From Bispira polyomma (Eukaryota): 64,000 bases of DNA. The notes below the pieces were generated by a model. It did not search any database. It saw only the letters and a list, made by a program, of their open reading frames with translations, and was not told the origin of the DNA. The position numbers were made by a program, and so were the translations under genes. Shown here in pieces: positions 17,501 to 32,500 of the stretch (position 1 is its first letter; each line of letters begins with the position of its first letter). Location: positions 78,926,001 to 78,990,000 of the forward strand of contig OZ287751.1 of NCBI GenBank assembly GCA_965649765.1. The letters run 5' to 3'.

Positions 17501-20500
17501 TAAACTTATTTTTCGCCATTGTTTTATGCTAAAATGCCACTTCTATTTTAGAAGACCCAAACAAATTTTCACTCTCCCAAGATGTCTGTAAAATAGAGGT
17601 TCTACTGTATATAGTTTGGTATTTTTGATAATATGATGGTGTGTTACACCTTTTAGGAAAGTACATGTATGTAGACTAATATAGGTTTATGTTTACTGTT
17701 ATGATCAATTCCTTGTATAGTATAATGTTATTTGTCCAATTCCAGGCAGACTTGTGGTATTACTACAAAATACTGGCCACCATGACTGACCAGACCTCTA
17801 GTTACTACAAAACATCAGGCCCATACAGCACAATGTCTAGAGTCTCGAGACCATCAATAATGAAGGGAGAGGGTCTGACAATGAAGAAACCTACTGGCAC
17901 ACAGAGAAGTCCATTATACAGTACTCTACCAAGAAACAACAAGTATTACCCCAGAACACCAGAAGTCAGACACTGTCATACAAACACGTCACCATATACC
18001 AGGGTAAAACCACGCAAAATAACCGCATCACCATATACCAGAATAAAACCATGCAATATAACCACATCGCCATATACCAGGGTAAAGCCATGCAATATAA
18101 CTACATCACCATATGCAAAGGTAAAACCACGTCATATAACCACACCCCAAAGTCCCCAGCTGTCTGGGAGTCTATACGGTTCTACCAGGAGTAACAATGT
18201 CACAGACAGTTGCTATGCCTCAGGGAATAGTACCAATCTACAGATGTTCCTCTCGCCTGGGGCTTATAACACAGATGGTGGTAATACTAAGAATACACTG
18301 CAGTCTTACCTGGTGAAAGGTGTGACCGATGACTCACCTGTCCTTGGTAGTAGACCGGATTGTTCAGGCAGAGAAGGTGTTCCATGCTGGAGTATGAGAG
18401 AAGTCCCAGATGTAATAACAACAGGTGTCTGTACAGAGCTGTATCTTCAGAGTCCACACAAGCCGCTGCTGCCAAGGCAAACTCCCTCAGGTCAAGCTGA
18501 TTACAGATACTCGAATGCACCCAAGGCAGCAGCACCATGTTGTCATAGCTACAGTCTTACAGACAAGGATGCCTTATTATTTGAGTCTTCTACTAAATGC
18601 AGATACTCACAAAGACCTAAGGCAGCACATTTTGGTCATGATTACAGTCTTAGAGAGAAAGCCTTATTATTGTCTGACCAGTCTCCATCCATTGACTGTT
18701 CATGTAGAGATAGTACGGTAACCAATGACACTGTGTCCTTGGATACCAACTGGGATCACTCTTCTTTGGACGCCAGCTGTAGTAGTTGTGTGGAGAGTAC
18801 GGAGTGTTCCATGTGTGACAGTATCACTAGTGGTGGCTCTGTATCTCAGTATAAACCCCTGCATCACCTGCTGTTCATGAAGCACGTCATATCCTGCCAG
18901 GCCTGTATTCAACAAGGAGATCTCTGCAAGCATGCCCAGCATATGGAGAGGGAATTATCCAGCTTCTTTGAAGTGGACATGTCTGACCATAATCATGCGG
19001 AGTTGTTGTCCCAAAAGTCATCCAGTGCAAGGAAGTATGCGAGGCAGTCATGTAGGACACAACAGAGTATCAACAAGAGTTTCAGCGTGTACAGTGAGAG
19101 AGACGAGTATGGATCTGGACTCTCAGGAGATTCTTACCAGGATTTAAGTTTCCAGCAGTATTCGGTAGAGATGCTTTCCAAGGCCAGTGAAAGTGTTGAC
19201 TACCAGAGCTTTGTGTCCGATAAGAGTAAGGACCTAAAGCAGGTGAATGTAGATGAGGTGTTGTTGCTGGCTAAGTCCCCCAGGTGTTGTAATAACAAGA
19301 GTGTGATGACCAGCAGTACTTCAGACAGGAGTGACTACATGAACAGACCCCTGTGTAAGGTCCCTGTCACTGGCTCCAAGATTGGCAAGCTCAACCATAT
19401 AGGGAAGAAAGTGAGGAGGTTAGCCAAGTACATGAACCAGTTGAGAAGAGGACCACTGAACCAGCAGTCTAAGCAAGAGGGATTCAAGACTATAGCAGTG
19501 TTGTAAATGTACTGGTATGTTTTAAGATCAAGTGCAAAATCTAAACTAGAGGGATTCAAGACAAAAGCTGTGTTGTAAATGGACTAGTTAGTTTTAACAT
19601 CAAGACATCAAGTAGAATTTATTACAAAAAAAAAATTAGTCAAACGGTATAGAGTAAGGAATCTAAAATTCACCACTGTATCCTAATTTCTCCACTTAGA
19701 AAATGTTTTTTTTTTTTGTTAGAATGTTAGTAATAATTGCTGAAATTGATAATTTTGTGGCTATTTTGCCTTTCTGACCTATATTGCAGTTATTTTTTAC
19801 CGAAATTTTTATTGATTTAGCTTACATTCTAGGGATGGCGAATTTGAGATACATTAGAGAATTTAGATTCCTTTCCCTACATAGCTATGACTTTGGAGCA
19901 TGCACTCTGCCAATGATATGGCGCTTCAGAAGATGCCTTGCAATAAATGGATTCTTGAAAAATGGGTATTATTATTAGGTGCCTAGCTGATGCTGAGATG
20001 CATTTAACACTTAAGAAAGTGATCGAAAGTTGCCTTACATGTATTTAATCTTGTTTAGTTGGTACCTAGACAATCAAATATGTATAAAAGCTGTAAAAGG
20101 CATCTGCATTTATTTAATATTCAATTGTAGATGTATTAGTATGAAATTTTTTGTTAATAAAGTATGTTCTTGTTTTTTTTTTGATCTTACATTAATTTTG
20201 ATCTTACCGTGATCAAAGTTTTTATCTTTATCCATAAAATACAATCAAGATATACAATAACATTTCTGTACCGAGCCCATCAAGCTTATTGGTCACTTTT
20301 AACATAACCTATATATAACCAGTATGTGTGTTGCAGATAAATAAAGCACAAAAATTTATAACAATAAGAATATCATGATATAGAATTAAAAAAAAATTAA
20401 ATCAGACAACCCATGACATAACACATGGCAAGATCTCAATATTACAACTTTATTAAAATGATGAAGTTTTAGGAAACAAATTTTACCTTTAAAACATTGA

Positions 20501-29500: not shown

Positions 29501-32500
29501 AAGTAGAAGAAGCTCCATGACGACAGTTACAGCATCTACTGGTAAGTGACTGAAAGCTGGAGTCAGTGATGGATAATGATGAACTGCAGAAGGTGAACTG
29601 GGTAGCCAGACCAGAGTCAGAGATAAGTGTAGAATGGAGAGGTCTGTCTGAAGAGCTACAAGATGACAGGATACTGTCAGGTCTGCCAGAATCTGTAAAC
29701 TGGGCATTCTCAGTACATGGAGCCATACTAGAGAGATAGATCTAATCAATACTGAGAGTAATTGAAGATGCTGTAGCTAATCTTGGTGACACACAGAGTA
29801 GAATGAGTGTTGACAGTCACTCAGGCTGTATTTATACACATGTCATCAAAGTTACTGCACATCTACTCAGGATGGAGCTGCTCTGTCCTTTGAACTCCCT
29901 TTGTTTCTGCTCAGTGTTTACCTACTCAGGATTATCTCAGGCCATGTTCTCTTTGGTAAGTGACTGAAAGCTGGAGTCAGTGATGGATAATGATGAACTG
30001 CAGAAGGTGAACTGGAATGCCAGACCAGAGTCAGAGATAAGTGTAGAATGGAGAGGTCTGTCTGAAGAGCTACAAGATGACAGGATACTGTCAGGTCTGC
30101 CAGAATCTGTAAACTGGGCATTCTCAGTACATGGAGCCATACTAGAGAGATAGATCTAATCAATACTGAGAGTAATTGAAGATGCTGTAGCTAATCTTGG
30201 TGACACACAGAGTAGAATGAGTGTTGACAGCCACTCAGGCTGTATTTATACACATGTCATCAAAGTTACTCCACACCTACTCAGGATTGAGCTGCTCTGT
30301 CCTTTGAACTCCCTTTGTTTCTGCTCAGTGTTTACCTACTCAGGATTATCTCAGGCCATGTTCTCTTTGTAGTTAACTACTCAGGAATGAGCACTGGCCT
30401 TTATTGCCTTTCATTTACCCTACTCAGGATTGCACTACTCAGAAATGAGCACTTGTCTTTGTGGCTTTTCATTGAACCTACTCAGGATTGCACTGCTCTT
30501 GTTTCATTTCTGCTCAGGATTACTCTTGATCAAAGCAACTGCCTTTTATTATTCCTACTCAGGATTACACTACTCAGGAATGAGCTTAGAACTTTGAGAT
30601 AGGGATAGGGGGAGCTTCTGTTTCCTTAATCTTTCTACCCAGGTTTGGATTGCTTTGGGTGTACATTCCTTCATCTTCCACTGCTCTACATACTAAAGCT
30701 GAATGTAAAACAATTGGTGCTTGTAAGGTCTTAATTGCTTCTTTGAATCTGTGTATTAATTGTCTATTTGGACAAATTACAGTAGTGAGGCAGAGGAAAG
30801 GGTTGACAACTATTGTTTAATGTTGATGGTGTTTATATTTATGTTGATCCAATGAAATAAAGTTTACATTTATTAAATACATAAACTCTTTTCATTTACA
30901 AAATTTTATATTTCTCAGATAAATTTAGATAAATATAAAATTTTATTGTACAAAAGTATTTGATAATAAAAGAGGAATTTGATGGATAAAAGTGTCATAT
31001 TTCTGGATAAAACTATTGGACAAAGCTTGTGTAGTGACATGTTGTGAATGTTATTACACCAATTAATTGGATATTTTTACTAATTAAATTAACCCTTTGT
31101 GATGCTAACACATCAACATGCCCAGGTGTGATGGTCCTCCCACTATTGAGACATGTCCCCACAATAGGAGTGGTAAAGATGTGGAATTCTGCAATGGGGA
31201 TTTGTTTTTGTGCAAGGACTGCAAGGTTCTTAATTTCAGCTCTGACAGCTCACAAACAGCTGTCAAAACAAAGACCAGGCAATCAAGTGAAAAGAGGTTG
31301 CCCTCAGAAAATAACAGCCAGAGTATCAGCCTAATGTGTGAAGGCCTATCTGATTCTCCCTGCCCACATCACAGAAAGGGGGAATGTGTCAGATTGTGTC
31401 AAGGTGATTTGATGTTGTGTTATGACTGTGAACACACAAGATTTCCAAGGGGGGCTGCAAATATAAACACAACTATGAGACAAACCAATACGGAGAAGGA
31501 AACCTGCCCTAATCCCATTATCCAACCACTTTTGTCTTATGTTGTATTCTCAATGCAAACAGGCACAATAGAAAACATTAAGAAAGCAGTTCTCACTCAT
31601 TTTCCAGCTGAGGCAATCAATGAGGCTAAGAACACATTATGGTTAGTTAGTGATATGACCATAATAGGAGAAAAGTCAAATCGTCAAGACTCCAGTAAAC
31701 GATCAGAGAAGGAAGCTCATGTGAATGACTTACTGTGTGCACTACAAAAATTGGATAAATATAACAAAATACCTTTCTTTGTTGTTGATGCGTTAAGTCT
31801 GGGTATGATACCAAGGGCTCGTCCTGAAGAGCTGAACAGTATGTCATTTATAGACAGACATAATAAACTTGAAGATCAGGTCAGTCAGCTGCAACTTGCT
31901 GTGGACAATATATTGGCCCATAGTATCAACTTGCAACAGACTTTAAATAAAGATACAGAGAGGAGCTACGCTTCTGTGTGCCAAAGAAATAGCTTACAGA
32001 GTGCTTGTGCTTCCCCTGCACATTCCCCAGTAATGTCAATGGTACAACACTCCAGCATAAAACCAATACAGACTAGACATCAGAGAAAGACTAATCGGCC
32101 AGATAAGAGTGATATCACCACTACAGACAAAGCTTCTCACAGTGTGGACTTTGACTTACCAACCAGTCAGCTTAAACGCATCCGCCGCCAAAATAACAAA
32201 CGCAATAATATCATTAAAGGAACAGCTAGCACAGTTAAAGTGAAAGGTGCACCAGAACCAACCAGGGATTTGTTCATATACAGGGTTGATAAAGGCACAA
32301 ACACAGAGGACCTACATACACTCATTACTGAAAATGGATTCAGTGCCATTCATCTGAACTGTATTTCTAACTCTGAAGCCAAATATAAGTCATTCAAGTT
32401 AACCGTGCCAGTATCCCAGTTCAAAAATCTTTTCATGGATAATATTTGGCCTATTGGTGTATGTGTTAGAAAATTCTTCCCACCTAAGGAAAAAGTCAAT

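Follow-up and report, generated by a model that had tools for sequence, protein, structure and literature searches.

An expanded, apparently annelid-restricted gene family with a tankyrase-type motif and members nested in a DEF8 intron

Wnt-induced feedback regulators include Axin2, Naked cuticle and Dapper. The motif by which AXIN1/2, 3BP2 and MCL1 bind tankyrase (PMC6082341, PMC5727255) follows rules that can be read in sequence, as follows. Position 1 is Arg and position 6 is Gly; position 4 is Gly, Pro, Ala or Cys; at position 5, Asp or Glu is preferred, with Val, Gln, Tyr, Ile or Cys also tolerated; Pro is not accepted at position 7, and Asp or Glu is favoured at position 8 (PMC6082341). 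Here, we describe a gene family that carries a motif of this type. Three intact members, A, B and B′, and a truncated fourth copy, B″, lie in one intron of the DEF8 gene of Bispira polyomma, within a stretch of 64,000 nucleotides that we call the window (contig OZ287751.1 of assembly GCA_965649765.1, positions 78,926,001 to 78,990,000 of the forward strand) and whose numbering is used below. Judged from their sequences, A, B and B′ belong to an annelid family that is old and has expanded; its proteins are mostly disordered, Ser/Thr-rich and intracellular, and are built as strings of short motifs. We lean slightly towards reading these proteins as short-lived adaptors that would dock on tankyrase.

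In most members, the sequence L-G-x-R-P-x-C-x-G-x-E is found upstream of a conserved C-terminal module. It had been missed in the list of conserved blocks of an earlier sequence-only reading of this DNA, made by a model. The strict form, R[PL]xCxGx[ED], is present at 30 of 45 loci (0.015 in shuffled sequences) and in 76 of 152 library proteins (0.06 when shuffled), and the looser RxxCxG occurs in 87 of the library proteins (3.4 when shuffled). In A, the motif is RPDCSGRE (18352–18375, + strand), and in B, it is RPSCVGRE (22697–22720, + strand). Of the features expected of a tankyrase ligand, the following are seen: Arg at position 1, Cys at 4, Gly at 6, no Pro in any of the 87 motifs at position 7, and an acidic residue at position 8 in 82 of them. 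Position 5 falls in the permitted set in 78 of the 87 (background 30%), with Asp or Glu in only 24; B has Val here, and A has Ser. Several members that lack Cys4 have canonical forms in the same context (RLPPDGQE, RPDADGKE), and RTEAEGQD is seen as well. A narrower ELM-style pattern, in a version without Cys4, matches none of the 45 loci. The substitution pattern of the eight-residue motif is the strongest evidence as to function, and from it we infer that the motif quite likely docks on tankyrase.

The family itself is defined by the C-terminal module and not by the His/Cys block of A and B. In A, the module spans 19321–19503 and consists of SD..D(F/Y)M..P, PVT, a basic amphipathic helix and a T(L/I)AVL end; in B, it spans 23282–23458. 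Most members share T-L-A-(V/I)-L as their final five residues. Matches to the module are found at 40–43 places on seven chromosomes of this genome and fall into 22 groups, one of them a fragment of another, leaving about 21 subfamilies, nearly all of which have a closer relative outside this genome among the library proteins. Two of the subfamilies are nested in DEF8. Since most members lie elsewhere, the nesting is incidental.

A profile of the C-terminal module was used for the wide search after a local hold-out test showed its higher sensitivity. In public data, it finds 167 clusters at 50% identity, with the matches at or near the protein end; a word-index homologue search gave five close relatives, plus two already known when a diverse alignment was used. 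Of 29 clusters whose names were looked up, one was informative, a hypothetical protein of the annelid Ridgeia piscesae, and no mollusc or model-organism name was among them, which suggests that the family is restricted to annelids. One cluster, P0136, groups a 45-residue Ralstonia hypothetical protein with an 829-residue family member, probably a clustering artefact. The genome also carries giant-haemoglobin linker genes. Searches of Pfam with whole proteins and modules, of PDB sequences and of the ESM Atlas gave no significant match. Foldseek and VIA-align searches with two models likewise returned nothing significant, the best Z-scores, 5.2 and 3.8, being for generic helical hairpins. No description of the family was found in literature searches, most subscription journals being outside their scope. 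The sequence-only reading, which recognised no known family and proposed a lineage-specific adaptor on a Ser-rich, probably disordered background, is supported on the first and last points and on lineage restriction; the family is much larger than the four genes that it described, with at least 40 loci here.

Comparison with a second species (locus L022, ENA ERZ22147071) bears on the age and coding nature of these genes. Five DEF8 exons are found there, with 91–97% identity, and the same DEF8 intron contains an orthologue of A in sense (L022:13173-14672) and an orthologue of B in antisense orientation, so that the nesting is syntenic, as the earlier reading had proposed to check. It follows that the older arrangement pairs A with B′ and that B is a recent inverted duplicate. 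Between species, orthologues have ratios of nonsynonymous to synonymous substitution (dN/dS) of 0.17–0.32 overall and 0.05–0.15 in the motif blocks (for A, 0.19 and 0.05), by Nei–Gojobori counts that are rough at the saturating synonymous divergence (dS) of 0.9–1.9; three concatenated DEF8 exons served as control. The blocks are thus under purifying selection rather than evolving neutrally, and this conservation shows A, B and B′ to be genuine protein-coding genes. Between B and B′, dN/dS in the blocks is 0.51, from few changes, and conserved block residues are altered in B; together, these suggest that selection has been relaxed on the duplicate. Elsewhere in the genome, B and its promoter recur as a dispersed copy (L003, G000:C1:87207554-87208693; dS 0.27), in which the SSFFEVD segment is internally duplicated. 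Paralogues on C3 (L013 and L019), C2 (L020) and C9 (L052 and L075) are broken by frameshifts or stops, indicating that members of the family continue to arise and decay.

The nesting intron (14768–36893, 22 kb) has Rubicon-homology (RH) exons on both sides. The upstream exon, at about 14642–14767 (+), matches PF13901 at the start of the RH domain and is 95% identical to its L022 counterpart; the exon that closes the intron, at 36894–37007 (+), is 97% identical. The earlier designation of this intron as intron 7 is consistent with the seven exon-like segments seen upstream. The three intact open reading frames (ORFs) of 574, 337 and 337 residues and the truncated fourth are where the sequence-only reading had placed them, and every block it listed as shared by A and B is present in their alignment.

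Gene A (17782–19506, +) encodes 574 residues in a single coding exon. The frame is open from 17689, and the M-T-D start at 17782, in a GCCACC context, is kept in the orthologue. A non-coding first exon is predicted at 16775–16905 (+), its start placed from the spacing to the TATA box, and A probably has an intron in its 5′ untranslated region (UTR), from a conserved GTAAGT donor at 16906 to an acceptor at 17745. The intronless coding structure described earlier is not family-wide, given that several paralogues elsewhere in the genome begin with acceptor-like sequence and no Met. An in-frame fusion of DEF8 to A through A's acceptor was rejected: although the phase is compatible in the window, the orthologue meets a stop four codons past its acceptor. 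The N-terminus of A contains S-P-rich 13-residue tandem repeats of the TSPYTRVKP type (17978–18172), of which the orthologue has one unit, and its 3′ UTR contains a 72-bp tandem duplication of the last codons and stop (19468–19604), similar to an in-frame duplicated tail in L016.

Gene B (22448–23461, +; 337 residues) and gene B′ (28713–29726, −; 337 residues) form the two arms of an inverted repeat of 1257 nt, 94% complementary. B is the recent duplicate on the sense strand, and B′, antisense to DEF8, has the ancestral orientation, matching the orientation and intron of P0002 in L022. The B′ promoter (29727–30600, −) includes a 414-bp tandem duplication of promoter and 5′ coding sequence, the origin of B″, whose ATG at 30140 (− strand) opens a frame that matches B′ over 61 codons and stops after 66. 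Contigs from three public DNA runs span A and B with no frame-breaking indel; in these independent contigs, A is without differences and B shows paralogue-type variants.

A blind comparison of the nesting intron in the window with that of L022 identified a conserved non-coding block at 16371–16795 (+; 71% identity over 430 bp), about 1 kb upstream of A, which is likely its promoter and had likewise gone unnoted in the sequence-only reading. The block contains five strict TCF-type sites, at 16376, 16502, 16545, 16644 and 16677, scored with the Wnt response element consensus CTTTGWW (PMC4267635); the first, second and last are exactly conserved. It also has a TATA box at 16741 and the conserved splice donor. 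The B promoter (21884–22400, +), conserved in three foreign homologues, has TCF-type sites at 21912, 22059, 22280 and 22323, a TATA box at 22337 and an initiator-like TCATTCT. Three to four sites are counted in this promoter, and the GTTCAAAGG site is exactly conserved in all homologues compared. Within the 64 kb, every 450-bp interval with at least four strict TCF sites falls on one of these two promoters. In addition, a homotypic, same-strand array of 5–10 copies of CTGAG(T/C)AG extends over 21884–22310 and 29870–30580, and its conservation extends to three other homologues. At other places in the genome, triple arrays belong mainly to satellites, and one on C9 lies near no family ORF. These promoters make it fairly probable that A and B respond to TCF/β-catenin.

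A and B share a His/Cys module, at 18865–18978 (+) in A, where its last residues are SSFFEVD, and at 22883–22993 (+) in B. The module is optional: only about 12 of the 152 library proteins have it, and it can occur without the neighbouring WDNSxLD/CxxC block, as that block can without the module. The H, C, C and C ligands are invariant in 19 members, and one Cys is changed to Tyr in the near-duplicate L007. AlphaFold predicts a confident helix-loop-helix (predicted local distance difference test score, pLDDT, 81), for which no structural match was found. The ligand set is compatible with the small zinc site proposed earlier, and zinc would be the likeliest metal, although the spacing H-x3-C-x2-C-x5-C is also that of an iron-sulfur ligand set.

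Additional short motifs are found in a subset of the family. A Polo-box-like P[LFMIV]xST is present in 36 of the 152 library proteins (6 in shuffles) and a β-TrCP-like DSGxx[ST] in 20 (3.7 in shuffles). The known Polo-box ligand of PBIP1 is PLHSpT (PMC6828814), and PLHST(L/V/A) occurs in the B and L006 subfamilies, at 22532 (+) in B. DSG motifs, at 22481 and 22556 (+) in B, are conserved in its orthologues; A has none. The C-terminal helix is basic and amphipathic relative to shuffles in 95% of members, with a helix moment of 0.80 against 0.58 when shuffled, bearing out the amphipathic helix of the sequence-only reading. A strongly hydrophobic stretch is present in only two of 151 proteins, and neither a membrane-spanning nor a signal-like segment is found in A or B.

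We propose the following scheme. In the C-terminal module, the universal part of the family, an acidic SD..F(M)..PL goes with a VT strand, the helix and a fixed T-L-A-V-L end; the module would most likely bind one partner, or a membrane surface, shared by the family. Upstream of it, the eight-residue motif of most members would dock on the ankyrin clusters of tankyrase, making these proteins its substrates or scaffolds, with turnover by poly(ADP-ribose)-dependent ubiquitylation; in the subset with P-L-x-S-T and DSGxxS/T motifs, these too would make for short-lived proteins. A and B would add the optional, predicted metal module. They would be transcribed from their own TATA promoters, whose conserved TCF-type sites indicate that both are probably switched on by Wnt/β-catenin, with DEF8 as a passive host.

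Several observations weigh against this scheme. About 43% of the library proteins, some of them fragments, lack RxxCxG, and the Ser at position 5 of A lies outside the listed permitted set. Both the near-fixed Cys4 and the L-G-x prefix go beyond what tankyrase demands, which leaves room for another or an additional partner. No TCF sites lie upstream of the L008 and L012 subfamilies, and when the L006 orthologue was tested prospectively, its sites were not positionally conserved, so that TCF control of the whole family is not supported; TCF-like and Sox sites also overlap in sequence. Finally, the public runs that cover the locus are all DNA, with no RNA run among them.

The same constraint on Cys4, Pro2 and the L-G-x prefix, together with the basic amphipathic helix, would suit generic membrane adaptors in which RPxCxGxE is there for a different partner, or for Cys chemistry by way of lipidation, metal or disulfide, and resembles a tankyrase ligand by coincidence. 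We consider this improbable, because changes at positions 4, 5, 7 and 8 stay almost wholly within the sets that tankyrase permits, and members without the Cys retain Arg and Gly with a canonical Pro-Asp or Ala-Asp. Equally improbable is a role as regulators of the cell cycle or early embryo comparable to Emi1 or Bora, combining Polo-box docking, a β-TrCP degron, a zinc site, a basic tail and mitotic tankyrase. It is favoured by the near identity of PLHST in B and L006 to the PBIP1 peptide, by the conserved DSG motifs of B and by short TATA genes suited to rapid expression, and is disfavoured by the low incidence of both motifs, the lack of DSG in A and the absence of any F-box or IBR match in Pfam. 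A more specific role for A and B, as Wnt-induced negative-feedback regulators, is possible but rather unlikely. A pulse of either protein would occupy tankyrase, spare Axin and damp the signal, and a PDZ protein, for instance Dishevelled, may be bound by the C-terminal end. Competition with Axin is feasible for a tankyrase-binding motif peptide (PMC5727255); yet a single motif per protein would bind weakly against multivalent Axin, Lys stands before the Thr in only 41 of 124 C-terminal ends, and most subfamilies have no TCF cluster near the ORF.

Two further alternatives concern origin and chemistry. The His/Cys module might bind an iron-sulfur cluster, or might have been captured from an RH gene such as the host, instead of being a new zinc finger. 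Among 19 members, eight match PF10588, the His-Cys3 4Fe-4S region of complex I, weakly (best E-value 1.1e-4; 15–19 bits where shown, against a gathering cut-off of 27) and two match PF13901 (best E-value 2.7e-4; 21.3 bits over 31 positions in one orthologue, cut-off 28.1), and exon-by-exon hhalign comparison gives up to 43% to a paralogous RH exon. But all these scores are below the curated cut-offs, neither fold is among the structural matches, and the scores are similar for two unrelated families, which is what Cys spacing, the probable source of the matches, would give. Compared exon by exon, derivation from DEF8 itself is not supported, hhalign giving 1% to the DEF8 exon; in DEF8, the motif spans two exons. 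We regard this pair of possibilities as distinctly improbable. A case for transposon-derived ORFs, or for neutral open frames, could be made from the long interspersed nuclear element (LINE) sequence adjoining several copies (31118–35568 in the window; L003; L017) and from the lack of an RNA run. The family proteins contain no reverse transcriptase, endonuclease, transposase or gag domain, and strong purifying selection, synteny and conserved promoters point the other way; from this pattern, we take a neutral or transposable-element origin to be excluded, its residual probability being minute.

Tankyrase-docking adaptors remain our preferred reading. In its fullest form, about 20 annelid tankyrase-docking, rapidly turned-over regulators would share a new C-terminal docking module, at least two would be direct β-catenin/TCF targets, and these would exert Wnt feedback through competition for tankyrase; taken whole, that proposal is doubtful. 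In any case, a family of 40 genes in about 20 subfamilies, conserved across worms and absent from Pfam, PDB and the literature searched, is an annotation gap. Motif analysis turns a "hypothetical protein" into one with testable properties, namely tankyrase binding, Polo-box binding and Wnt induction, and variation over 87 motifs is an independent check of the tankyrase rules. Annelid segmentation and regeneration rely on Wnt/β-catenin, and lineage-specific Wnt targets or feedback regulators would be useful to that field. If the mechanism fails and the family holds, the C-terminal module is still a new domain that deserves a profile.

The window has other features. An intact LINE (31118–35568, +), with a 473-residue ORF1 and a 1010-residue ORF2 (endonuclease and reverse transcriptase), lies in the same DEF8 intron and adjoins the B″ promoter; reverse transcriptase fragments similar to it flank L003 on chromosome 1 and the paralogue L017 on chromosome 6. 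A second LINE (107–3693, −) has an intact 1068-residue ORF2. A 261-residue ORF (6065–6850, −) encodes a NADAR domain (E-value 2e-38), of an ADP-ribose-related enzyme family. Further along are a 54-bp minisatellite (43050–44130), a partial copy of a DEF8 exon start (about 44012–44050) just before that exon at 44137, and a tandem repeat with a 68-bp unit (44420–45040), in which a DEF8 3′ splice site and the beginning of the exon are copied. An assembly gap lies near 40584–40712.

Compared with known systems, the family resembles several and is homologous to none. The likeness of the His/Cys module to NuoG/NDUFS1 (PF10588) and to PF13901 lies in H-x3-C-x2-C-x5/6-C, with a Gly three residues ahead of the last Cys; the differences are sub-cut-off scores, no structural match and a module that is optional here. 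With PBIP1/CENP-U (PMC6828814), the match is of five residues only and is not found in most members. The gene beer belly (bebe; bioRxiv 10.64898/2026.10.24.761492) is likewise a previously overlooked invertebrate gene tied to Wnt signalling. It is predicted to be secreted and is present in most phyla, whereas the worm proteins have no hydrophobic leader and carry intracellular-type motifs; identity is unlikely, the two being set apart by description and not by sequence. Like the Bearded/E(spl)m4 family (PF15952), the worm genes are small, clustered and largely single-exon, and their products combine short conserved motifs with a basic amphipathic helix. The helix is C-terminal in the worm family, however, and membership was rejected: of the Bearded motifs, G and D occur in 0 of 152 proteins and N at chance level, and PF15952 had no match in Pfam scans of members, nor in a genome search run without a positive control.

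The Wnt-induced regulators Axin2, Naked cuticle and Dapper are closer in logic, through the TCF-type promoter sites of A and B, the motif-string architecture and a fixed hydrophobic C-terminus as in Dapper. The worm family differs in having no homology to them, no EF-hand and no His tail, and a class I PDZ end is present in only 2 of 152 proteins. With AXIN1/2, 3BP2 and MCL1, it has in common a disordered context, Arg1, a small residue at position 4, Gly6, no Pro7 and an acidic position 8. It differs in its nearly fixed Cys4 and in having usually one motif per protein, without homology outside the motif and without RGS, DIX or other known domain. What is new is the family; the motif logic, that of tankyrase binders and of inducible feedback regulators, is already known.

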